Assembly: GCA_009103225.1 (NCBI GenBank)
Contig: RHPI01001168.1
Coordinates: 604,424 to 668,423 of the forward strand
Length of the DNA: 64,000 nucleotides
Direction: 5' to 3'
Origin: Chlorokybus atmophyticus
Taxonomy: Eukaryota > Plantae > Mesostigma and Chlorokybus algae
Shown: positions 33,129-50,600 of the stretch, in pieces
How positions within the stretch are numbered: the first letter of the stretch is position 1
Layout of the letters: each line of letters begins with the position of its first letter
The notes under the pieces: generated by a model
The model's database searches: none
Told to the model about the DNA's origin: nothing
What the model saw: only the letters and a program-made list of their open reading frames with translations
Program-made: the position numbers and the translations under genes

Positions 33129-36100
33129 TTAGGTTGAAGACTGTTTTCGTCGCTTAAGTGTGGGCATGCCGCGCAATCTGCCTAACACCAGTGGCCCTTC
33201 AAACTCTTCCACAGGGTCACCGCTTACCGGGGGGCCAGACCCCTCTGTGGAGGCTTGCAGGAGGGACGAACCCAGCACAGGAGCTGAAACTGCTTCACTC
33301 ATGGGAGTGAGTGCCAACGCGCCGTTGGAGTGCTGTTCAGGTAGCTGTGCTTGTGGTAAGAAAGGAGAAGGGCTCAATGGCGGTGCAGCAGGTGCTGCTG
33401 AAGGCACAACCGCTAATGTTGTATCAACGCCTTCCGTACGCTGTGCTGTCCAGGGGCTCTCATGCAACCCGCCACTGCCGGGCGACAACTGTGGGATCTG
33501 CGCTTGAGGTGATGTGGCCATGCGCGTATCGTGTCTGCCGCCGTTTGCTTTCGCCCACTTAGCAAATGGGTCCGCCGTGCGACGCTTCCTGGCTTGCTTC
33601 TGTACTGCTCGATCTTCCTCAGCCGTGACAAACCCGCCCCCACCAGCATTAATACCCCCTGTGGGTGTGGGTATTGTTGGCGACGCGGGCATAGGTGGTG
33701 AACCCGCAAGTGTTGGTGGAGCAATACGTGCAGTGTCGGCGAGTGCCAACTGTTGGGCGGGGGCTTTGCTGAGACTGTCGCGTCGCTGTGAGGGCAAGCT
33801 TGCCTGATCGGCCTCACCCTCCTTGTCACTACCGCTCTCCACATAGTGTACTTTGCGCGTTGTGCGTGTGGACTGCATCAGACAGACACGCGTGTCAGTC
33901 ACACGTGCACAAACTGCCAACTGGCTCGCATGACACACATACAAGTAGGCCCCAGGCTCCTTACCCTGCGGGCTGGCATGGGTTGGGGTGCGCTCGCAGG
34001 CCGACGCTCAGCTTCGCTATCAGTCAAGCCGCTCAGCAGGTGCGGACTGTCCTCTTTTGCAGCATTGGCACTGCGTGGCCGCCCTTTCGCAACAGTCTTA
34101 CGACCTTTGCCTTTGTGGGTGGCCACAGCATCTTTGACAAGAGGAAGATCTGCTGGTAAGGTGTCCTGTGTGGCAGGCAGAAGTGCTTTTGGTGCGGCTT
34201 TTGCTTTGCTGGGGCTGTGCATCAGAGGGTTCTCCTCGTGCTCCTGGAAAGAAGTGTAGAAGTGTTACATGGGTTGAGAATATTCAACAAGAAGGGGAAG
34301 GGCAGAGGAGATTGCAATGAACACACCGTCAACGAGAGGTTGGCGGCGTTGCGAGCATTGGTTGCATGAGCCAGCGCCTTCTGTATGCGCTTGCTGCATG
34401 CAAGCAGAGTTGAGGAGTAGTTAAGGAGTACCCACAGAGTTCTTACGCAACGGGTTGCAACTTGTGCATGAAGCGACTGATGCTGCGAGGTGCAAGGCAT
34501 GTGCTCTCTGCAACTAATCAAGCTCTCCGCTGTCATACCTGCGAACCTTTGCAAAGCGCTGTGTGAATCCGAAAAAATGCTCCATGCGCAGCTGAGTCTC
34601 TCTCGCATCATAAGCCTTCAGGACTGGTATCAGCACCTCATCTGCTTTGGCGTCCTGCCAGCCGAACTTGTTGCGACAGAGTTGGCGCAACACGTCCAAA
34701 TCTGGACGGCCCCATGAGAAAGACTCCTTGGAGTCGTCTACCTGCAGCCACACGTTTACACCTACTAGTGGCATGAAGACAAGCACCACACGAACCTTTG
34801 TGCAACACAGTATCAATTCAAAACTGCAGAACAAGATGAGACCTGTGGTGTGCGATATGCTTCCACGACATTGGGTGACGGAAACAAGGCAGGGAGCTCC
34901 CAGTTCTTGCGTGCCCCCTTGTGTTTGTGCTTAAAGATGCGCTGCAAACACGCAAGGTGCTGTACATCCGACAAGTTGCCTCCACCATTGTCTGGTCACG
35001 AGTACAAGCAAATAATCATGTTGCTGGCTGCGAAGAACATAAAGGCCAGAAAAGCAACAGCGGTACGATTACGCTTACAAGCTTACTAATACTTTCTTAC
35101 ATTTACATCAGTCAGTACTGACCATGTGTCTCTTCAGCCACTGCCGGTGGGTCCAATAATGTCATGTCTGGGGCTTTGACCCAATCTGCATACTTCCTTA
35201 GGCCTTCTATTCCAGGGAATGCGCTTATTGTCTCCATGGCATTTACGATACCAACACCGCTTACACCCTCCGTGTAGTCACTGCAAACAGGCTACCAATA
35301 TGCAAGCACATGCAACTGAATCATGAGCAACCGTGACTCGAGCTAGTACCTGCCAAGCAGAAGTGCAAGAAAGATCAACTTGTCTCGATCCATACCCAAC
35401 TCCCGCTCCACATCGCTCATCTGGTAGTGCTCCACATACTTCTTCTGGTCGAATATGTTTCGGTAGACAGCTCTTCCCCCGAAAAGGAAGACATCACAGT
35501 CGTCTGTCACAGTGCCTGCCGATTTCACACATCAGCCAAGCAGCATTGCAAGATCGGCAGTCTCAACCCGACTTTACTGTACCATCAACGAGCCCGAGAC
35601 TCTCCAAGGCAGCGCACTGCGCTTCCGCCTCCATTGGTGCAATGACATAAGGCAGCCCAAACATCTGGCGGCCAAAGGTGATTGCGATGTTAGCACTCTT
35701 TGCTGATGTGTTCCACGGACGCGACGCATTGAGTACACCAACCTGCAGTAGCTCCTGGCACTCTGCAAGCATTTCCACAGTAACAGACTCTGCAGCCTTC
35801 TCATCAGTGCGATGCTTGGCCTTCAAGCTGGTGGCCTCGGCTGCAAGCTGCTGCCGCAGCTCCTGGGTGTCAAGCGCCGTATCCCCCGCCAAGTTTTCGT
35901 TCAAGTTCTTCGCCATGTCTCCATTGCCAGTCGCTGCAATGTCGGACTCGCCCATGTCCTCCACGACCCCAGCAGGCATGTTTTGATTTTGGCTAATGGG
36001 CTTGGGTGTTGCATATTTGTCGGGCAGTTGGTAAAAAGGTTGTTCTAAAGTTGTGTTCTGATCATGAATAAGTTTGGCTTTGCCTTTCCTCCTGTAGTCG

Positions 36101-39100
36101 TCTTCAGCAGCAGCAATGGAGTGGGAAGGGTGCGTGTCGGGCAACCTTTGTGGCCTCTTTTCTGATATGGTGATGCCAGGTTTCCGTCCATCCGCATGCG
36201 GCGCATCAGCAAGGCTTAACTGTATTGCCTTCTGCAGCTCTTGCTCTTCGGAGTCTGCAGCAACGTCATGTGCAACCTAGCATCAACAAAAAGTACACAG
36301 GATCAGACCACATGGTGTTGCCATGATGTGGTACACCCATTAGGCTCGGTTGAGCTTTGTACCTGTTGACTATCTTCAAGACTGCGCCTGAGTGCCTCCT
36401 GCAGCTGCTGTTTCTCGGTCTGATCTACAACTGCTTGTGATTGCATGGCGATGCCTATGTTTGTTCCGGTCCTATCCTCAGCGTCTTCCAGGTGAACGTG
36501 TGCAAGCGCATGCTCAACAGCACGCTCTTCAACATCACCAGAGGTCTCAGCTGGTGCATCCTCCCAGTCAGGTTCTGTGGCCTTTGCCTGTTCTTGACAG
36601 GTCACATTCTTGATGACCTCCCGCAGCTCGTCAGCAGATGCATCCTTCCAGTCAATGTCCGAACCCGTGTTGGTTCCAACCTTTCCATCTTGATCTGCGA
36701 CTGCATCTTCCCAGTCAATGCCGTCATCATCTGCCTGTGGGCTCACAGCCTTGGCGGCGCTGCCTATGACTGCATGAGGAGCTTCATCGTCGCTGATGGT
36801 GATCTCTATGGCCTTCACTTCCGGCAGTCGCTGTCTACCGACTTCCTTGCTACTAGAATAATGGACATGCGTTGAGCGTGGCAAGGGTGGGGCTACGTTG
36901 TCTGGTGTCTCTACCCTCAAGGTGCTTTTATCACCAATACTGTTCAGTTGCAGGATGGGATCCGCAGCCTCATTGTCCACATCATCATCCTCACTGCTGG
37001 CGTGAGCGAGCAGGCCAGCCTCTTCTTGAAATAAGTCCATTGTTAGATCAGGAGCAGACACCTGAGTGTGTGCCATGTAAGTCGCGCTAGGTTGTCAGTT
37101 CCAGAGGGCCACTTACTACCCTCCTATCACTTCACGGTACTACATATCAGTACAAATCCCTGAACATCATACTTACTGGCATTGTAGGCACCTGCGCTAA
37201 CGTGCTTGTGCCTAGCCCAGCCAATGGCGACTTTGAGAAGAAGGGCGGTGGTGCCTTGCTGCTAACAGCAGTGAACAGGTTCCTAGCATGCCGCGGTGCC
37301 TGAGCGAGTGCCGACAGAGGCTTCTCATCTGCACCAGCACTTGGTGCATGTGAAGGGAGCGGCAGCGGAGCTTGGGCTCCTGCCGGCAAACTCTTTAAAT
37401 CGCTGCATTCCAGTCAAGTCAGTAAACATGAATGTCAGACACATCAACACACAAATGAGTGGCTTGGTCTGTTGAACAGTGGTGATGCCTAGGGGTAATA
37501 CGGCAAAGGCTGTGTGACATGAGAGCCAGTGCGAACCTATGATTTGCACCAAGTAAAAGAGATGTTGAAGCACCAAGTATGCTTACCCCTGGTAGTTGTC
37601 AGAGAAAAGGTACTCTCGGTTGATCTCTGATGCTATTCGTCCTGAAGCCATGCCAGGCAAGTTGGCAGCATTGCCACCTTTCTGCAACATGTAGCCACTT
37701 GAGAGGATTGTATGGACAGACCACACGACAACATCGTGTATGCTACTCACAGCTGCACCAATGGCATGTGAGCAGCGTCACCTGCAGCTCAGCCAAATGC
37801 CGGCGGAAGCGGGTGCTCTGCAAATAAGCCTTCATCTGAACTTGCGAGAAGGACTCCGGGGCCTGGAAGTGATTTCAATCACTGTTCAGGCTTGCAAAGT
37901 GCATCTGCACAGCGATGTGTTCAACCGGAAATGCGTGCACAGGTTCCTCAATTGCAAAGGAAGCAAGCACCTACGACATATTCAACGCAACGCAACGCGC
38001 AAAAACAATACGCACCTTGGCGACTTGGTGGTACTTCTCTCTATTTTCTGTGAAGCGCCTATCCCTCAACTACACCACAAGCAGTGTTAGGAAGCGAACA
38101 GCAGTCAACTGGTTCAACAACCTTATCAACATCACCAGCGCAAAGCAATTCCCCTTTACAACCGCTGAGTGCACATGCTTACTTGCACTAGGGCTTCCAA
38201 CTGCATGGATACTGGCAGGGCGGCGAGTACTGCTGGATCCAGATTCTCTGTGCTCCCTTCAAGCCAGGGCTGCGCATATTACAACAATCTCACGCTGCAG
38301 CTGACAGTCTCACTCCATTGACCACTAGAGTGACACACTGTTATGCGAAACTAACATCATATGCAAGAAGACGTTCAACCGCTGATTGGACATACCATAA
38401 ACATCTGCTGGTCTTCTTCATCCTCATCTTCTTCTTTCACTTCTATCTGACCAACAGCCTGGGCGTCCTGCTCCTGCGCCAGCGACCTGGCCAGCCTGCA
38501 ACCGGAGCCAGCTTTCAAACCACACACGCGTGAGCAGCAAAGACAATGCGCATAAGTAGCGCTCCCAGCAAGCAGGGAATGCACACATACAGCTCATCGG
38601 ACGCTGTGTGGTTAGAGCTTTGTGGCAGTGATAGCTGACTAGATGATGGCGCATTGTGGGGAACTCGTTGACTGCCGCTAGCTGGCTTTTTTACAGCCCT
38701 CTTCTTTGTAGGTGGAGGAGGCAGCCCAGCAGCTTCAGCAATGACGCGCTCATCAATGTGACGAGCCCTCAACTGATTGAGCAGCAGCTTCTCTGCAGTC
38801 TTGCGCATGCGGGACACAGCCTTGTCACGCTGGCGCCTGTTATGAACAAATCACAGCATGCAGCTTAGTTCAATCCACATAATAAATGACAGCCTATCGC
38901 TGAATGGCTGCTTACATATGCATGTAAAGAGGCAATATTGCAAAATGGCTTCTACAAGCAAGAGGATGAGTGAGCTTTACCTACGAGCAAGCACCGTACG
39001 TCTCTTGAGGGCGGGCGTCCCGCCATCAAAGACAAACACGGGCCGCACACGAAGGTAAAGCAGCTTGCAGATGCGGCGGAAGAAGCCCAGGAGGTGTGCA

Positions 39101-39812
39101 TTTTTGAGCATATCACCACGGTCATCTCGCATCGCCTTGATAAACTGCACCACCCATATGGAGGCATCTGCCGTGCATGCTGCGTCAGTGTTCATACTGA
39201 CACAGCTCGTAAACCCTGTAGCATGCACTGAGCATGCAGCGTACCAGCAACAGTCGAGAGCCAGCTCAAACTATACGGAGAATCAATGAACACTATGGAT
39301 GTCTTATTGCTGGTTTTGTAATGGCAATGACAGCTTCCGCAACGTGTGTATGAGTACAATGTAGCAATCAACTGTCACTGGCATGCTGAGAGGAGAGGCC
39401 AGCAGAACACGCAACACATGGGGGAGCAAGCATACGCACTGAATAAATACTAGGAGAGAGCTTCGACATATAAAAGTCAACAACGTCAGCAAGTCGTCAC
39501 AGCCGCACGTAGTGTGTGCATGCAAGTTTGCGTTCTTCTTCATCAGCGTGCAGAGCATGTGCATTACTCCAAAATCTGACGGTGAAGCTACGCCCACAGC
39601 ATCAAACCGGAATGTTGTAGTTCAATAACGTTCCGAGCTAATTCAAACGAAGGTGAGCTCAGACTTGGATTGATGGTAGCAACAGAGGCAGGTTACAGCA
39701 GAGACGAACAGCCAACTACAGTACCTACGGCCAAGCGTTTGTTGCCGAGAGCTTCGACTGAAACGCGTCTCCCGACCGGCTCGAGCAGACTCCACAACCC
39801 CTGCACACCCAT
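33129..39812 (-). CDS. UVH3: XPG/RAD2-family structure-specific endonuclease
   Basis: N domain [29 protein letters not shown]|[32 protein letters not shown]; spacer with [14 protein letters not shown]; I domain [35 protein letters not shown]|[13 protein letters not shown]; WGRPD motif; basic low-complexity tail. The exact last exon is less certain. Confidence 0.93.
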
Positions 39813-39959
39813 TGCCGCCGACAACCCCTGCCCCGACGCCACCGCCGCTGCCGCGTCTGCCTTTGCCGCCCTTCAGTATCGCTGATCAGATACGCTGGTT
39901 CAAGATACGTGCGTATCCAAAGTGTTTGCGATATTTCAACCTGGATACACCTGCGCCGC

Positions 39960-40058
39960 CCGTTAGGGTTTTGAAAATTTTTTTCCGGCGCTTTGAACTG
40001 AATTCAAGCAAGGTTGAGTTGCGGTTAGTTGCTAACCGTCAACGGGCGGTTTTGGCGG
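39960..40058. promoter_or_regulatory. Cluster of cell-cycle-type motifs in the XPG / coiled-coil gene bidirectional promoter
   Basis: MSA-like CCGTTAG (39960-66) and TCAACGG (40039-45), CHR-like TTTGAA (39970, 39992), E2F-like TTTGGCGG (40051), and telo-box-like TAGGGTTT (39964). These are short motifs and function is unverified. Confidence 0.4.
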
Positions 40059-40330: not shown

Positions 40331-43300
40331 ATGGCGTTCGGATCCAGTACACCCCGCTTTCAGGAGACCCGAGGCTCCACGCCAGGTGAGAAGTGGTGGA
40401 AAGCTAGCATGCCAGCCAATTAACAGCGGAGAGAGCTGAGTATTCAGCAGATTCAATTCAACAACTTGTTACAATGAACACTTTACTCCACCTTACCAGC
40501 AGCACTGTCTTTGCTTTGGGAGTGCAGGCTGTGGTAGTAGTCGTTCACCTGACACAACTACTGCGTGAATTTGCTTGATGTCTCTCTGTTAGGCTTTGGA
40601 CAGACGTTTACCTCGGTGTAAGCAACCTTTTCAAGCGAAGGGCATGTGTACAGACCAGTCACCTGGCATTGAGACAGGCCTTGATTTTTGTCGTCAAATG
40701 GGTCAGCCCAGTAGGCGCCATGCAACAATGCATTTGCCCAGTTTATTGTCCCGTCATCTCCTATTGTTTGCAAAGAAGAGCATATACATCTGCAAGTCAG
40801 GCGATACATGTACTGTTGTTGCTTAGTTGAGGTGTGTGAAATGAGCGTTGAGTCGAGCACTGCGCAAGTAATGACCGGCATACGTGTTGCTCAGGTCCTG
40901 GCGCGTACAGTGTTGATGACCACAGAGTCAACGACCAAATGAGCAGCTTCTTCCTAAGCAAGGAAGAGCGCTTCCGCCTTCAGCAGCAGCAAGCAGCTGC
41001 AGAAGCGTTGGGGCCTGCCATGGAACCAAGCTATTCTAAGCGACCCCCAATCAAAGGTACATAAAAGCCCCTCAGCACCAATAGTGGGAGCCTTATGCTT
41101 ACCACCTAGCAGTCATCTTTTGGACAAAGGCGCCACATAATAGAACAGCTCAAACGTTGTGTTGTAGACCTGCAAATGAGTCTTGGTTTGTGTGGCAGCA
41201 ACGCACTTTAGTGCCTGGTGGCCAGCTATGTTACTGGTCACTTGCACTCACCTGGCACAATGTCCTTGACCTTAGCTGGAGTGTATTGATCAATGACAAC
41301 AGTGTCTGCAGGCGTGCGTCCACGCTCAGGGCGCAGCCTACGCGAGTTGAGCCGCAACAGCAGTCTGAGCACGAGCTCCACGAGCTTGAACGGGCGCGAT
41401 GTGGAAGATGCAAGGGTACGTGTTGTCTGCACCACCCTCCATAATGCTCAACTCACAATCATTCTCGCACAAGCCCAACCTAGCAGCAGCAATCCTAACA
41501 CATGTGCTACCACAGCTCGTGCCGGCTAGTGAGCAAGAAACTGCTACAAACATGGCTGTGCCATCGTCGAGTAGGTATGCTTCCTAGGCAACGCACATGC
41601 TGCACCTTCCCAGCTGTCATAGCATCGGCACTACCTGGTTACAAGTGCAGGTTGCACAACCCCTTCTGATATGCCTGACTTCAGTGTTTTGTGTTCATCG
41701 TGCTTCAGACCCTTCAATGGTGCAGCCAACCAGGAAGTCCAAGCAGCTCCATCCGAGTTCAGCGCACAGTCGGACCGTCATGTCATTGATGCTTGGGCAG
41801 AGCGTGAACAGCGGTTGCTTGCCGAAGTCGAGTTGCTGCAGGCAAACATAGAAGCTGCGCATGGTGCTCGCTCCCGCTTGGAGGTCAGCATGATGTATAA
41901 AGCTGAACTTCAAGTCCGTGTTCTTCCTATGTGGCTTACGTATGCATGGAGTGTTGTTCACCTGTATCTCGAGTGTTGACTGAGGTCTGGCTCATGCAAT
42001 CTCATAGCCTACAACAAACTTCACCAGTGTTCTGCGAGCATTGTCAATCCATGCATTGCAACTTAGGTGACTGTGACATGTCTTTGACTTAGCCTGCTTG
42101 CACAGGGTGAACTTGAGCACCAGAGGCATGAGTACAGCGTGTTGCGGCAAGCTGCGCAGTCAACAGCTCATGCTTTGTCCCAATTGCATGAGGAGATTAA
42201 GACGAACGGTGAACGCACAGCGCATCTGCAGAAACACGCGGCTATGCAGGTGCAGCAGTGCACTGCTGCTAACAACATGCCACTGTAAAATCACAAACAA
42301 CAGTTGAGATACAACAATCCTGCGCAGGCTTTGGCTCTCAGTGAGGCAGCGACAGACATCAAAGCCAAAGCAGCGGAGTGCTCTCGGCTGATGGAGATGG
42401 CACAAGCCATGGAAGCAAAGCTGATGCGCGAGGTTGCTGCACGCGAGGATGCAGAAGCCAGATTGGCTTCAGCTTCGGAACAGATGCGTGCCAAGCATGA
42501 AGAGCTTGCCAACTTGCAGGTACCAATGCCGATGCAAACGCAGTAATCATCAATTGCGCGTGTTCTGTGCTTCATTGTGGGGTTGCAATGCATGCCTTAA
42601 TATCTGACTGCTGCTTCATCAGGAGTCAGCGATGTCTCAGGCAGCACGCGAGGTGCAAGTGAGGACACAAGAGTGTGCGCAGCTATCAGATGCAGTGCAA
42701 GCGACGGAAGCCAGGCTGCAACAAGAACTGAGTACGCGAAAGGACGCAGAAGCTCAGCTTGCAGTTGTTGATGCTCAAAACCGCAAAAGAGAACAGGAGA
42801 TCAGTGAGCTGCAGACCACAATGGCAGCTCAGGTATGTGACACTCGCAACTTTGGTGGTGCTGTTTGCAGGTTCAGCGTGACATGCACACTGATACTTGG
42901 CCATGTACAATGTGTCTACCAGGAAATACAGCTCGCCAAGGTGTTACAAGAGCTGAGCCAGCTGGTGCACGAGCGTGAAGCTCTTGCACAGGAACACTCT
43001 GAGTTGAAAGAAGTGCATGCTACGGGTCAGGCTGTACTAGAGGAACGCGACATGCAAATCAAAGGTTTGACGGCTGCCATTGATGAGAAGCAGAGATTGC
43101 ACGAGCACACTGCAGAGCTCACACGCGCGCATCAAGCAGCCATACAGGAGCTGCAGGTACAAGCTTTAACTGATATTGCGTTTGCCAACAAGGGCCACAC
43201 TTGCGGTTGACTGATCCCATGATTTGGTGCAGCATGAGATTACCGACAAAGCGATTTCTTTGACTCAGCATATACGGGACGCCAACAGCACCATCGCTGA

Positions 43301-46300
43301 GTTGAAGGCTGCCAATGCGCAGTTGAACTTGCAGGTGTTTGGGGTTGTGTGATGCATGCGGGTTTGTTGGTTCTGCAAAGGCTGAGGCTGTGTGGCTGTT
43401 CCAATGCATGCAGTCAACCCAACATTTTTGTGCCTCAGGTGACTGCAAAGGACACACGCACTGAAGAGCTCAGCAAGGAGTTGGCCGTTACGCGCAAAAA
43501 GCTCTCGATGGCCACAATTGAGTTGAGCCAGCGCATGGCCGAAACGCGCGGCACAGAGCAGGAGTTGCAAGCGGCCCTTGCTAGTTCTCGCAGTGATTAC
43601 TCGAGTGTCAGTCACAATTTGCATCTGATGGAGCAGGCATTGGCTATGTCCAATGCCAAGGTGGAGGTTCTGGAACAGCAGGCCATCGAGCACGACAAAG
43701 CCATGACACTGCTTCGCAGCGATGCTCATCACTATGAAGCATTGTTGATGGAGTCTCAAGCACAGAACAAGGCTTCACAAGCAAAGCTCAGCAACCTCCA
43801 CGATCAGGTACAACATACCTCCGCGTGTGCACATGCGTGTGGTCGTGGGCACTCTTTGTTCGTGCACGTAGCTACCCTTGCTGCATGCACTGTGGTTATG
43901 TAAATTATCGTTTACGCGTATGGTCATGGGCACCCTCCGTGCGTGCACATAGCTACCCTTGCTGCATGCGCTGTGACTATGTGCATTTGAAGTAGGGCAT
44001 TTGTGTTGCACCCATGTCGTTGATACTCCTTGCAAGCAGTGTGTCACACTCTAAAGTAGCAATTTGCGTACAGCTGGAGTCCACTCAAAGCATGGTTGCT
44101 GAGCTACGGCAGGCGTTGATGATGAGAGACAAGCAGACTGCGAAGCTCCAGCACCACAATCATGACCTTGAACTGCAGCTGGAGAAGATGAATACTGAGT
44201 TGACCAGCTGCCAGACGGACCTGAGCGACCTTCAGCTCGCGTACCTTGCTTTGCAGCGCCAGCAGGAAACCGCAATCCTCTCGCACTATGAGCAGCTGAA
44301 CCAGCAGAATCAGAACCATGTGGATGAGGTGGAGAAGTTCCGGGCTGAGGCGAGCATGTTGACGCATCGGCTCACATTGGAAGAGCAAGCGAATGCCACA
44401 TTGCTTGCAGAGTCCAAAGCCAAGCTTGGAGAGGTGCACTTTGGCAATTGCTGTTAGCACGACTGCATGCCAGCTGCATCGCTTACAACTGTCTTTGTTG
44501 CAGCTTGGTGAGCACATCATGGAGTTGCAAGACAGATGTCTTGAGCTTGAGAAAGCGGTATCAGTGAAGGAGGAGCAGCTGCAAGCACATGTTGCCAATG
44601 ATGAGGCTGTTCAGGCGCAACTGGAGCAGAGCAAACAAGACATGGCTGCAATCTCTGCAGAGCTGTCGCTAAGGGAGGAGCAGCTGCAAGCACACGTCGT
44701 CAATGATGAGGCTGTGCAGGCGCAACTAGAGCAGTGCAAACAAGACATGGCCACAATTTCCGCACAGCTGGCGCTGAAGGAGGAGCAGCTGCAAGCACAT
44801 GTCACCAACAATGAGGCTGCGCAGGCGCAACTGAAGCAGAACAGAAATGACATGGCAATAATTTCCGCACAGCTTCACCAGGCCGAAGCGACACATGCCA
44901 CAGCTTCTCGTGCTTGGGAGGTCAAGGAGTCTGAGGTATGATGATCAATGCGTTAAGTTGGCATGTGCAATGTTTTGTTCTTGCGCTTGTTTAGTGCTAA
45001 AATTCCATTTGTGCGCGCAGTTGGAATCAAAGTTTGAGCAGCAACAGCAGACCATACTTGAAGCTCAGACCGAGATAGCGGAGTGCACGGCCCGTCTCGC
45101 CGAGGTCGAATCGCAGCTGGCGGACAGCATGGAAGCCGCGTTTGCAATTCAGATGGAGGCAGCGCAGTATCAGGCAACCATATCAAGTCTTAAAGGCAAG
45201 TTGCAAGAGAGCAACCAAGACTTGACCGTGCTGCAACAGCAGCTTGCGCAGCGGAATGAGCAGATGTCAGACTACCAGTCTCGCCAGCAAGAGCTGATGC
45301 AAAGCTTGGAAAGCAAGGAGGCTCATGCAGCCGATCTTCAGCGACAACTGGCGGCCTCGTCCACGGCGATGCAAGTGTGCTACAAGGAGCTCAAGGCCAA
45401 GGATGCCAGAGTGGCGGAGCTCAACGCCGAATGCACCAGCTTTCAAGCAGAGCTCGGCGACATCCAGGCCGAGCACCTCGCCCTGCAGCGACAGATGGAA
45501 GCGACAGTGCTCAAGTATGACGCGCAGGTTCAGCAACTTAAGGCGCAGCATGCGGCTGAGGTGGAGAAGATCTCCGCTCAGATCAGGTCTATGCAAATCA
45601 AGCTCGAAGCTACAAAGTCTGAGGTATTCAGCAGCAGGAAGTATACACAGTGTAACGAGTGCAGATAGCTGCAGGGTATCCCCATTTGTGTCTAATTTGC
45701 TGATGTTGACTTAATCTGTGTGCAGTCCCAAGTAGCCAGACAGCAGGCAAGCAGCCTGCAGGACAAGCTGAACAACGTCGAGAAGGCGGCCGAGCTGCAT
45801 CAGAACCAGCTGAGCAAGGTTGAGAAGGCAGCGGAGCTGCACCAGAACCAGCTGCAGGCGTACAAGGCCGGCAACCACTTGCTGGAGACCCAGTTGCGCC
45901 AGAAGACGCAGGATCTGCAAGGGCTGCAGGCCCAATTGAAAGACTCAGAGGAGACACACGTGGCTGCCATCAACATGCTGGAGTCAAAAGTGGAAGCCAA
46001 AGATCTTGAGGTACTGTTGATACGAGTCCTTGTAATCTGATGTGGACGCATACCAATTTGAGATGGTAGTCTATAGCATACATGGCAGGACACATAGAGC
46101 AAGAGCTTCGCTCGTATGTTTGTCTGTGTGGTCAAGCGCAATGTGATGCAGATTAACAAGTTGCGGGAGGAGATGGCTGCACGTGTGGAGGCTGAGGCTA
46201 CTCAACAAGCACAGCAGCAAGTTGATGCACAGGTTTGCATCTACACACCAAGCATGTTTGTGATAATGAGTCGGTGCTTGTATTCTGAACTTGTGTCTGC

Positions 46301-47295
46301 AGCTTGCGGAGATCAAGGCCAAGAGCGAAGAGTCCACCCTGATGTTGGAGCTGGAGCTCCAGCGCCTTCGCACTGACAACCAGTCGTTGAAGGAGCATGT
46401 GACCCAACTTGAGGTACAGCACGGCAGTGCATTGCTATAAGATAGTGTATGTGGCTGCTTTGTTTGTTGGAACACTTGCTTACGAACCTGCGTGCACAGG
46501 CCAATCTGCAGGAAATGGTGGACATGCATGCGTCCCTGGTAGACCATAACAACCACAAGCAAAAGATACATCACCATATGAAGGTGAGGGTTGTTGCACG
46601 CATTGCGTAAAGGTTGTGTTTGGGCTGTGTTTGGGCTGGTTCTTCTCATCCAAGCCAGCGCATGAGATATGCAGCATGTTTATCAATCTTGGCACAATAC
46701 TCTTAAATGCAATGCAGGTCAAAGATCAGCTTCAGACAGCCAGGAAAGAGCTGTTGACACTGGAGGAAGAAAAAGTGCTGTTGGAGCAAGTACGCGGCTT
46801 TGTACCATGTGTGACTGTTAGACGACAGGTGACTGTTGAACACCATGCTGACTTTGTACACGCTTGTGGCTGTTGTCTCAGGTGGTGAGGTACCTCGTGT
46901 ATCGCCAGCTGCCTTCTCACCTCCAGAAGCCATGGCACAGACTGAAGCAGGTGAACATAGCAGACAAGGAGAACACCGCCGGCGAGCTCGCATATGATGT
47001 CATTGAGCAGCGTGTTCTTGCAAAGGTACAGTTGTGTGCACATGCATGTGTGTGATGGTACTGTGTGGTTGTAAATATGTTCAGACTGTGTAAATACTGA
47101 CTTCCCTAACAGACATGTCTACTTTGTTTATGCTTGCAGATTGAAGCGCTCTGCGGTACAAAGAGAGTTATCCCTTTGCTGAGCAAATCGGTGGAGAGTG
47201 CAGAGCTGCAGCTGTTGCTCAATCAAGCACGCCCAACGATCCAGGCACTGGCAATCACTAAGTCCGGAAGCTACTCCGTTGCTGCACAAGAATAA
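40331..47295 (+). CDS. Long coiled-coil protein with HMMR/RHAMM-like N- and C-terminal motifs
   Basis: Exons 40331-40385 and 40895 onward give MAFGSSTPRFQETRGSTPGPGAYSV..SSFFLSKEERF. Many Q/E/L-rich heptad exons follow. Exon 46500-46583 gives HASLVDHNNHKQKIHHHMK|VKDQL; a KEN box follows; stop TAA at 47293-47295. Confidence 0.8.
43840..43983. repeat. Imperfect 81-bp intronic tandem duplication
   Basis: TGGTC(G/A)TGGGCAC..GTGCAC(G/A)TAGCTACCCTTGCTGCATGC at 43840 and 43921. Confidence 0.75.
44567..44881 (+). repeat. Coding 105-bp (35-aa) tandem repeat x3 in the coiled coil
   Basis: (K/R)EEQLQAHV.N.EA.QAQL.Q...DMA.ISA.L.. starting at 44567, 44672 and 44777. Confidence 0.9.
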
Positions 47296-47668: not shown

Positions 47669-50600
47669 TCAGGCTGCTGTTGTTGAGTGTGAGTCTGGAA
47701 GACCTGCTCGTGTGTCTGTTGCAGCAGCAGCAGCAGCCTCATCAACAGCCGTGAGCTCTGCAGGCGGGCCTTGGTCATCCGTGCGGGGCGCGCGTGGTGT
47801 TGGAGGGATACCACCAGAGCCTTTGTAAAGCACAAGCACTCAGGTAAGAGGTTTGCATGCATCAAGGAATGGCGTGTGTAGTGCAAATACATTCTTGCAC
47901 CGTACCATGATATGCAGGTGTTCGCGCCTTCTTCCCAATGGCGTTGCGATCGGGGCGCTGGCCAGTGAGCCGCACAAGTTCTAACGTGTCAATAACAGAC
48001 TTGTGGCCGAAGGACTTGGCTTCGTCGTACGCAGTGTTGCCCCATCGGTCCTTCTTGTTCAGATCGGCCCCATACGCCAGCAGCAGCTGCAGCCACAAGA
48101 GCTGCATCTTAATTGTGTATGGATAGTCCGTGTTTGCATGGGTACATGAGCTAGTATGCGTGCATAGCGTGTGTGTGTTTGAGTATCAGCGAACGCACGC
48201 ATGCGCATGGGCAAGCACACATACACATACACACCTGTGCCAGTGGCTTCAGACCCTCCGCGCAGGCAATGTGAAGAGCAGTACGCAAATCATAGTCAGC
48301 GGAGTCGGGGTCTACACCATAGCGTAGCAGCCGTCGCAGGTAGTCAATGTTGCCGGCAAACGTGGCATTGCAGAGCTCGCTGGCGGGTTCCCTCATCTGC
48401 AGTTTCCCGCCCAACTGCGTGCCACCAATACAACTCAAGACATGCACACGCACGCATGTGCCTTGCAGAGTGGTAACTCTATCCTCTCACCTCCACGAGA
48501 AAGGCGCACACGTCCTCGTGGCTAGCCTTGACAGCCTCCATGAGCGGCGTGATCCCAAAGTGGTCCATAGCATTAATGTTGGCACCCTGCTGCGCAAGAT
48601 ACCGCACCGCATCGAGGTTGCCCTTCGCTGCCGCCAGGTGCAGGGGAGCCCTCCCGTCATAATCCGCTGCACTCGGATCAAACCTTTACACAGAGAGACA
48701 TGTTGGGTGACTACAACTATGTCGTGTCGCATGGAAGGATACAACATGTACTCGTTACTTACCCCGCGGAGGCGATCTTGCGCAGCTGAGCCACATCCCC
48801 ACGCGAAGCCGCAAAGCACAGGTCCATGACGGTGTCCTGGTCTTTACCAGCAGCAAACTGCTCCACCTGCGCGCACCAACTTGTTGTTGCGTTGTTGTAG
48901 TGAGCTGCTGCATGCGTGGTTGTTATTGTCGCGCAACTCCAATCAAGAATGGAGTCATTTTCTCTCACCTGTGATACAAGCTCGACATGCAGTGGATCTG
49001 TCCTCCTTTTCAGTACCAACGCCAGATTAAGAAGAACCGTCCTCTGGTCCTTGGTGGAGTTCTTCACTGCCTGCTCGCAAACAGTGTGCATCAAATAGCA
49101 AACACAGACACGCGTGCACACGTCCACACCCTGCTCGCAAAAGGTGCATCATCTATCAACAGCACACGCACGCACACACGCTGCATCGTCAGCACCTGCT
49201 GGTATGCTTCTCTGCTGATGACGAGTGCTCTGCAGATGGCGTCGCTGGCTGTGCGCACGGTGTAAGGCTGAAGCAGATCGCACATGAGGGCCGCCTCGCC
49301 AAAGCAGTCGCCCATGCCAAGTGTCGCGACAACAGTCTCCTTCCCTACAAGTTGGAACATATTTTCTCATCGTGACACGTTGTGACACCAACTGCCGCAT
49401 GACACAACTCACAAGTACCTGTGTCGTCGGTGATGACGAGCTCCACGGAGCCGGACAACACAATGAACATCTCGTTGCCCGCGTCGAGCTTCTCGGTCAA
49501 CACAACGTTGTTGGGCATGAAGAAGTCAGACGTCACGTTGCAGACGAGATGGTCTATGAAGGACTCCGTGCAACCCTGATCACAAGATTATACACTTCAG
49601 ACCCACATTATCAGCTCTCTACTCAGGCATGCTTTGCTGGATACCAAACCACTTCTTTAGCATCTATTAGCCTTTTGTCAGACGTGCTTGCCTGGATACG
49701 AGAATATGCTGTTCATTCAAACTGCATTGATGTCTGTGTTCTTACTTGTGTATATACATTTTTGGGGGGGTACCCGTTGTACCGAGTCTTCCATCAACAA
49801 TATACTAAGAGCAAATGACACTAGTAGTAGAACATGTTGTGTTATACTTTCACCTCCATGTGTCTCACCTGAAACAGGTAGCACCGTCTGAGCGTCCTCA
49901 TATACACTATCCTCGCCACTTTGGTCCTGAGCGACTGCGGGAAATGCCTCAACACATCCTGTCTCTCGTCTTTCGTCTCGAACTGCAGCATGAGGTACGC
50001 CTTCATCTGTTGCCGCAGCTCCGACGGCACGCGGTTCTTCTTTAAGAATCTGTTCAGGGACGCGGAACGGTCGCGGTAGTCGGCGGTCACGAGGTCGCGC
50101 TTGGTCACGAGAGCAGTCATGTTCCCTGTGTGGGAGTGGGGGAGATGGTGTTGTTGTTGTGTGGGGTGCAAGTGGTTTGGTCGGGCAAGGGGTATCCAGT
50201 ACTTGGGATGACAGGTGTGCGTGTGTGCCTGTGCACGTTGTTGTGTTGTGCGTACCGAGTATGTAGGATGACAGGCCTAGATTGAATAGCATGTAGATGC
50301 AGTCCATCCACATCTCGCCGGCGTTTACAGGATGGTAGTCGCCATACCCTACCGTCATCTGCATAACGATGAACAGCTCTGAACCCAACCCTCACGCACG
50401 CACGCACGCACACACACACACACACGTATATGCACACAAACCAATTCTGACTACACAACTCATTGTTACCAGTGTGACCACACTCCAGTAGAAGCTCTTA
50501 GTGTATCGCAGCGCGAGGTTCTCTGCAGTCTCAAAGTCTGGATCGTACGAACCGAGCCACGTGTTGGCCGGGTCCGTGTACAGCGTGGCGATGAAGTAGA

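Follow-up and report, generated by a model that had tools for sequence, protein, structure and literature searches.

A motor-less coiled-coil protein of the streptophyte alga Chlorokybus atmophyticus, probably HMMR-like in its C-terminal zipper

Introduction

Does a streptophyte alga carry a distant member of the HMMR/RHAMM class of spindle proteins? The question is raised by a gene located at positions 40331-47295 (+ strand) of a 64,000-nucleotide stretch of the Chlorokybus atmophyticus genome (hereafter the window; GenBank assembly GCA_009103225.1, contig RHPI01001168.1, positions 604,424 to 668,423), in which an earlier note, made from the DNA letters, had recognized an N-terminal motif, a very long coiled coil and a C-terminal motif in the order in which they occur in HMMR. 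Chlorokybus is an early-diverging streptophyte alga, not a chlorophyte. HMMR is defined by microtubule binding at the N-terminus, a coiled coil that makes up about 80-89% of the protein, a C-terminal basic leucine zipper (bZip) and C-terminal degradation motifs (PMC7226759). The bZip binds TPX2 and targets centrosomes; it is common to HMMR and the tail of KIF15/Xklp2, with 72% 'homology' to the TPX2-binding bZip of KIF15 (PMC7226759). HMMR has been found in chordates and in many insect orders (PMC7226759), and the literature searched for this work described it in chordates and insects only, with nothing linking HMMR/RHAMM to plants or algae.

Here, the gene model, transcript evidence, structure predictions and profile matches of the Chlorokybus protein were analyzed. 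To the reading that the gene encodes a distant, non-motor, microtubule-associated coiled-coil spindle-pole adaptor of the HMMR/RHAMM class we give slightly better than an even chance. Gene, transcript, layout of the protein and motif match are the observed part of this reading; kinship with HMMR is probable, judging from short motifs that score below database thresholds.

Results

A single transcript encodes both ends of the protein

The interval 40331-47295 (+) corresponds to one protein-coding gene, and it runs exactly from start codon to stop codon. The spliced model (Table 1) comprises 4134 nucleotides (nt) and 1377 amino acids, with GT..AG at every intron and compatible phases. The encoded protein is letter-for-letter identical to P0001, the EukProt entry Chlorokybus atmophyticus jgi Chlat1 6974, which was used as the reference sequence for full-length protein analyses. 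All peptides quoted in the earlier note were recovered from the + strand of this locus.

Transcripts of the gene were found in two public runs. In run X1, 49% of the words sampled from the locus were present, roughly the expectation for spliced RNA, and one 7359-nt contig aligned to 40880-46879 with 15 GT..AG joints, six of which were seen again in run X2 from a second study. At its loose ends the X1 contig reads into exon 1 (before 40892) and into exon 19 (after 46791), which places the N- and C-terminal exons on a single transcript. This removes the objection, named in the earlier note as one that would overturn its proposal, that the two ends might belong to separate transcripts. The same contig revealed a 59-nt exon (41516-41574) that was not suggested by the map of open reading frames and is known solely from transcript joints, and it set the acceptor of exon 42328-42519 at 42328 and not at 42304. 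The junction between exons 19 and 20 is based on manual reading together with the Chlat1 6974 gene model. At its 5' end the contig begins ca. 35 nt before the ATG, and an in-frame stop codon is located 45 nt upstream of the ATG.

Two side observations were made on the transcript. The in-frame AG acceptors at 42304 and 42328 are 24 nt apart; the transcript is spliced at the downstream one, and splicing at the upstream one would lengthen the protein by 8 residues (LRYNNPAQ). At position 43496 the X1 contig has G and the genome A, which changes the first base of codon 499 from Lys (AAA) to Glu (GAA); this mismatch may stem from strain or allelic variation or from an error in the assembly.

The C-terminal zipper matches the conserved core of HMMR

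The peptide HASLVDHNNHKQKIHHHMK is encoded by exon 46500-46583, and the VKD.. that completes the core opens the next exon (46718-); the intron that separates them, between K1254 and V1255, is of phase 0 and interrupts the core motif. The basic stretch (residues 1246-1254) lies ahead of the leucine heptads, whose a/d core runs V1255/L1259, A1262/L1266, L1269/K1273 and L1276/V1280, then L1283 in the next exon. In an AlphaFold2 model of the C-terminal part, residues 1191-1287 form a continuous helix with predicted local distance difference test (pLDDT) values of 84-96, and the tail is of low confidence.

The core KQKIHHHMKVKD (residues 1246-1257) was compared with K635-D646 of human RHAMM, using the sequence of the human K635-K666 peptide as given in PMC11404675, and 9 of the 12 residues were identical. 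The ungapped BLOSUM62 score of this 12-mer was 41. Shuffled sequences gave a mean best-window score of 19.9 (standard deviation 3.1, maximum 37), none of 20,000 reaching 41, and 12 unrelated proteins scored at most 19 against the 12-mer. Ahead of K635, the human protein has what we take to be LLGHQNL.

When the protein was scanned exon by exon against Pfam, the exon bearing HNNHKQKIHHHMK matched HMMR_C (PF15908) by itself (24 bits, E = 5.3e-5, columns 62-94); HMMR_C was the sole family match on this exon, and the other 16 pieces of the protein were unmatched by it. Residues 1227-1285 of P0001 scored 24.9 bits (E = 2.6e-5, columns 66-107) and the last 178 residues 21.8 bits (E = 2.4e-4). The human K635-K666 peptide maps to columns 84-115 of the same profile with 50.5 bits; human K635 lies at column 84, and algal K1246 therefore occupies the same column. 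The algal 32-mer alone gave no Pfam match, so that columns 62-83, which precede the core, contribute to the HMMR_C score. Controls consisted of 10 proteins, mostly rich in coiled coils; absence of HMMR_C was judged on 7 of the 10, and HMMR_C was missing from the complete match lists of these 7. A common ancestry of this zipper with the HMMR/kinesin-12 (Xklp2) zipper class is most likely, and what the data bear out is an HMMR-like protein, probably homologous in its zipper.

The N-terminus combines a possibly HMMR-like start with one STPG-type unit

Exon 1, which encodes MAFGSSTPRFQETRGSTPG, joins the ..PGAYSV..SSFFLSKEERFRLQQQ of exon 2 across a phase-1 GT..AG intron. The protein starts with MAFGSSTPRF..STPGPGAY, and its N-terminal ca. 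143 residues are mostly unstructured: AlphaFold2 modelled residues 1-143 as largely unstructured, with short helices at 30-37 and 41-56, and a confident helix from residue 144. Exons 1 and 2 together amount to one PGPGAY repeat of the STPG/SHIPPO type, with STPGPGAY at residues 16-23 and no other PG.Y in the whole protein. SHIPPO-rpt (PF07004, cut-off 20 bits) was the sole profile match at the N-terminus (residues 17-32), scoring 20.5 bits on residues 1-55, 18.2-19.7 bits on longer N-terminal pieces and 13.6 bits on the full protein. The linker that follows (residues 57-140) has an isoelectric point of 10.2 and contains 8 prolines and 19 Ser/Thr; exons 3-5 encode this linker, a putative microtubule-binding region.

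Table S1 of PMC7226759 gives the N-terminal 20-mers of 27 animal HMMRs and of Miranda proteins; their consensus is roughly MSF.KA.[IL].RFN[DE]....AP[PS], from Met1. With one gap, the algal MAFGSSTPRFQETRGSTPGP has M1, F3, RF, G and P in common with it, Q/E replacing N/D. After residue 20, human HMMR presumably continues with ..SPGAYDV.. and ..SFQKSQRF.., segments that we treat as a lead and not as support. As it stands, the N-terminal sequence is compatible with HMMR and by itself provides no support for it.

A 19.3-bit HMMR_N match on the stalk exon 45726-46010 was rejected as coiled-coil noise, since bacterial coiled-coil proteins outscore it on the same columns. Columns 150-330 of HMMR_N draw 18.7-31.3 bits from unrelated, mostly bacterial coiled-coil proteins (P0010, P0007 and P0012), one of which exceeds the gathering score of 30.1 bits. 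Caution is warranted with HMMR_N annotations of long coiled-coil proteins.

A long proline-free stalk is followed by a single KEN box

Residues 142-1288, 83% of the protein, are free of proline; of 16 prolines in total, 12 are found in residues 8-141 and 4 at residue 1289 or beyond. Combining the AlphaFold2 models of both ends with the absence of proline, the helix runs from residue 144 to ca. 1287, giving a stalk of about 1145 residues. Ala, Leu, Gln and Glu constitute 50% of the whole protein, and in the exon-by-exon Pfam scan the stalk produced solely unspecific coiled-coil family matches. The stalk contains two in-frame tandem duplications, one at 44567-44874 (105 nt, 2.9 copies, with the 35-residue unit EEQLQAHV.N.EA.QAQL.Q...DMA.ISA.L) and one at 45759-45854 (42 nt, 2.3 copies, with the 14-residue unit VEKAAELHQNQL..), as if the coiled coil had recently grown through unit duplication.

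The KEN box that had been noticed downstream of the zipper, within ADKENT, is indeed there: it is the only KEN of the protein (K1307-N1309, 46966-46974; 0.30 expected per protein from composition), is located about 50 residues downstream of the zipper core, and is a candidate degron.

The protein has no motor domain

No kinesin, motor or enzymatic family was matched by Pfam anywhere in P0001. The absence of a motor domain, as claimed from the DNA letters, is borne out by this result, by the in-frame stop before the ATG and by the divergent XPG gene upstream.

No relatives were retrieved by database searches

Searches with the terminal segments, which the earlier note had suggested, returned P0001 and nothing else. 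With the C-terminal 163 residues (E up to 10, 5.8 billion proteins), only P0001 was retrieved among candidates of 757-2410 residues and nothing among those of 406-1291 residues; with the N-terminal 80 residues, at the same E-value limit and database size, only P0001 was retrieved among candidates of 757-2410 residues. When the largest exon was compared with 1.84 billion cluster representatives, P0001 was the only sequence below E 1e-10, and no relative was found. A scan of metagenome contigs gave 53 pattern matches and no relative among them; in the PDB, neither the algal C-terminus nor the human 32-mer retrieved an HMMR or kinesin-12 chain; both termini were without a usable match in the ESM Atlas; and the precomputed database annotation of P0001 contains no HMMR domain. 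With a word index and a database this large, motif matches of 25 bits stay invisible; at 5.8 billion sequences such a match has an E-value of about 10, so that empty searches do not exclude distant kin.

The stalk-exon search also yielded 12 weak coiled-coil look-alikes, which were discarded; neither terminal motif is present in them.

Neighbouring genes and the promoter region

A divergent gene of the XPG/Rad2 nuclease family lies upstream (Table 1). Its N-terminal exon reads MGVQGLW.., with XPG_I about 3.6 kb further on, and it starts about 490 bp away from the HMMR-like start codon, the promoter being common to both genes. The two copies of AACGGGCGG found in this promoter are the only ones within the 64-kb window (0.29 expected), and a pair of TTTGAA elements (39970 and 39992) lies between them. 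AACGGGCGG contains what we take to be the AACGG core of plant mitosis-specific activator (MSA)/MYB3R G2/M elements, and its two copies may give a weak hint of mitotic expression.

On the other side, three open-reading-frame pieces matching Ank/Ank_4 mark a convergent ankyrin-repeat gene (47862-48607, - strand). The 7359-nt X1 contig exceeds the 4.1-kb coding sequence by about 3.2 kb, and may for this reason merge overlapping 3' ends of convergent genes.

Table 1. Positions, in window coordinates, of the HMMR-like gene, its parts and the upstream features
Feature	Position	Strand	Description	Basis
Whole coding region	40331-47295	+	21 exons, 1377 codons plus stop (47293-47295)	Transcript joints, splice sites, reading frame, identity to P0001
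Exons 1-7	40331-40385; 40895-41056; 41312-41415; 41516-41574; 41709-41883; 42106-42249; 42328-42519	+		
Exons 8-14	42623-42832; 42923-43156; 43233-43334; 43439-43807; 44074-44433; 44504-44935; 45021-45623	+		
Exons 15-21	45726-46010; 46152-46232; 46303-46413; 46500-46583; 46718-46789; 46882-47025; 47140-47295	+		
Exon 1	40331-40385	+	MAFGSSTPRFQETRGSTP-G, residues 1-18 and first base of Gly19; N-terminal motif from Met1	Loose end of transcript contig
Exon 2	40895-41056	+	PGAYSV (40897-40914), SSFFLSKEERF (40942-40974), short helix	
Exons 3-5	41312-41883	+	Basic, Ser/Thr/Pro-rich non-helical linker	Composition, AlphaFold2
Exons 5-17	41709-46413	+	Coiled-coil stalk	Absence of proline, AlphaFold2, composition
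Exon 18 of 21	46500-46583	+	Residues 1227-1254, ANLQEMVDMHASLVDHNNHKQKIHHHMK; HMMR-type bZip basic region; core from K1246 (46557)	
Exon 19 of 21	46718-46789	+	Residues 1255-1278, VKDQLQ..LLEQ; core end VKD (46718-46726) and leucine heptads	
Last two exons	46882-47295	+	Residues 1279-1377, zipper end and C-terminal tail	Low-confidence helices
XPG/Rad2-family nuclease gene, divergent	35563-39842	-	XPG_N 39693-39842 (27.3 bits), XPG_I 35563-36144	
Inverted AACGGGCGG copies	39956-39964; 40041-40049	-; +	In the 490-bp promoter, about 80 bp apart	

Discussion

The Chlorokybus protein shares with HMMR/RHAMM the absence of a motor, a signal peptide and a transmembrane segment, a non-helical N-terminus in which, with one gap, the pattern M-x-F...RF-[NQ]-[DE]...P may be read from Met1, and a content of 83% coiled coil, as compared with 78-89% in those animal entries of Table S1 that have the bZip. 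In both, the stalk ends in a basic region and leucine zipper with the core KQKI-H--K-KD, and a KEN follows. It differs in that Ala6 and Ala18, termed critical in HMMR/Miranda, are not conserved, in that the human basic cluster K657-K666 has an acidic counterpart, in failing the Pfam HMMR_C cut-off and lacking an HMMR_N match, and in belonging to a streptophyte, without a hyaluronan context. With 1377 amino acids it is about twice as long as the human protein (725), insect and frog entries reaching up to 1241. The layout and the zipper core proposed in the earlier note were supported. At the N-terminus the only profile match is a generic repeat, and the outcome which that note had said would refute it, termini that fail the HMMR profiles and match only generic STPG/ODF3 repeats or kinesin-12 tails, applies in part.

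Other families share single traits with the algal protein. Kinesin-12 proteins (KIF15/hKlp2/Xklp2; plant POK and KIN12) end in a leucine zipper that is reported to be of the same class, but carry a kinesin motor domain that the algal protein lacks. Miranda of Diptera is likewise a largely coiled-coil, microtubule-dependent adaptor with HMMR-like first residues (MSFSKAKLKRF..; PMC7226759), but it has no bZip, and its 20-mer aligns best inside the algal stalk. The algal STPGPGAY followed by ..FF.SK..RF resembles one repeat unit of STPG/SHIPPO proteins (ODF3/CIMAP, PF07004), but it is a single unit and not a tandem array, with a 1145-residue coiled coil and a zipper attached to it. Lzipper-MIP1 (PF14389), the plant zipper of DUF547 proteins, gives a sub-threshold match over the same zipper, but the algal protein has no DUF547 domain and its KQKI-core exon is unmatched.

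Several observations weigh against kinship with HMMR. The HMMR-type C-terminus is in the right register and agrees in 9 of 12 core residues, but its pieces score 21.8-24.9 bits, under the HMMR_C gathering cut-off of 28.6 bits, and the full-length protein gives no reported HMMR_C match. The likeness ends at the 12-residue core, the score of the 32-mer being reached in 206 of 20,000 shuffles, and the second basic cluster of RHAMM (human K657-LRCQLAKK-K666) is absent, the aligned algal TLEEEKVLLE being acidic. The same zipper (residues 1216-1283) gives 24.6 bits with Lzipper-MIP1 (cut-off 32.2), a score that is spread over 70 heptad columns, with 16 bits on the core piece and none on the KQKI-core exon. 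E-values of coiled coils are inflated, as illustrated by bacterial coiled-coil proteins that score 25-31 bits on HMMR_N. At the other end, a motif at Met1 can be lined up with one gap, but HMMR_N (PF15905, cut-off 30.1 bits) does not match residues 1-55, 1-80 or 1-150 and the only profile match is the generic, borderline STPG/SHIPPO one. HMMR_N also fails to detect genuine animal N-terminal 20-mers, and its missing match therefore says little about the first residues. Local alignment of the human 20-mer was non-significant (its score was reached in 127 of 1000 shuffles), and the other four animal 20-mers aligned best inside the algal stalk and not at the N-terminus. Finally, the protein, cluster and metagenome searches left both termini and the stalk without a relative. 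As formal Pfam thresholds failed, the protein is not filed as a proven orthologue; the 'true orthologue' of the earlier note goes beyond evidence in which HMMR_C is sub-threshold, HMMR_N is unmatched and the second basic cluster is lacking.

These points feed the alternative that the gene encodes a lineage-specific long coiled-coil protein, for example a filament of the centrosome, basal body, flagellar root or nuclear scaffold, that acquired its HMMR-like motifs by chance or convergence. A basic stretch before a leucine zipper is a common design, all HMMR profile scores are sub-threshold, Lzipper-MIP1 equals HMMR_C on the same zipper, coiled-coil E-values are inflated, the similarity of the N-terminal 20-mers is non-significant, and there are no detectable relatives among 1.8 or 5.8 billion proteins. 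Furthermore, the shuffling result corresponds to p < 5e-5 per protein, and a proteome with tens of thousands of proteins could still contain one 12-residue match of this quality. However, the 9/12 match falls on the core that the literature defines as conserved in HMMR, this core lies, as expected, where the stalk ends C-terminally, its Pfam register agrees with that of human K635, and columns 62-83 ahead of it match the profile as well. The Met1 motif, the 83% coiled coil and the downstream KEN would add several independent coincidences, and we regard chance or convergence as rather unlikely, while rating it the strongest of the alternatives.

Much less probable is a motor-less descendant of kinesin-12, in which the TPX2-binding tail of KIF15/Xklp2/POK was kept, the motor lost and the N-terminus replaced. 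The zipper motif alone cannot separate HMMR from kinesin-12, because the HMMR bZip is 72% 'homologous' to that of KIF15 (PMC7226759), and the length of 1377 residues is near that of KIF15, whose last residue is 1388 (PMC7226759). Yet neither the protein nor the upstream DNA contains a trace of a kinesin motor, the 5' end of the transcript lies 35 nt before the ATG and has an in-frame stop ahead of it, and the stalk search found no kinesin-12 stalk. Lowest of all, by a hair, we place an STPG/SHIPPO-type (ODF3/CIMAP) microtubule-associated protein of cilia or flagella, lengthened by a coiled coil and acting in the flagellar apparatus of the zoospore and not in the spindle. SHIPPO-rpt is the only N-terminal profile match, with up to 20.5 bits for a cut-off of 20, and Chlorokybus has flagellate zoospores with multilayered flagellar roots (PMC9614468). 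Nevertheless, the family is built from tandem repeats, whereas the algal protein has one PG.Y motif, its full-length SHIPPO-rpt score falls to 13.6 bits, and the C-terminal HMMR-type core and the KEN would be left unexplained.

For the distant HMMR/RHAMM-class adaptor that we favour, we infer dimerization, microtubule binding, docking to TPX2 and turnover dependent on the anaphase-promoting complex/cyclosome (APC/C). The stalk would form a parallel dimer and the N-terminal region would bind microtubules, while the zipper would dock a TPX2-type partner and target the protein to the centrosomal mitotic spindle poles of Chlorokybus; through the KEN box, APC/C would remove the protein at mitotic exit. 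Chlorokybus divides by furrowing and uses centrosomes in spindle formation (PMC9614468), and a centrosome-targeted adaptor has for that reason a plausible place in this alga.

A wider proposal, which we put forward tentatively and at less than even chances, is that a motor-less adaptor made of a microtubule-binding N-terminal motif, a long stalk and a TPX2-type zipper predates the split of plants and animals and was kept in centrosomal Chlorokybus. HMMR would then not be an animal invention; the adaptor would have been lost, or have diverged beyond recognition, in acentrosomal land plants, and would represent a trans-acting counterpart of the kinesin-12 tail. The 'ancient HMMR-TPX2-kinesin-12 module' of the earlier note outruns the evidence, with HMMR_C below threshold, HMMR_N unmatched and no relatives found.

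If the likeness is convergent, a basic region and zipper at the end of a long stalk would be a design that evolves easily. If homology holds, the Chlorokybus protein would be a very distant, new member of the HMMR family. The presence of HMMR in insects, which are free of hyaluronan, has been taken as an argument for a spindle factor and not a hyaluronan receptor (PMC7226759), and a true homologue in this alga would settle the dispute over the original function of HMMR and move the origin of the family back near the root of eukaryotes. It would also provide plant and algal cell biology with a candidate partner of TPX2 at centrosomal spindle poles, and the loss of the adaptor alongside the loss of centrosomes in land plants would become testable.

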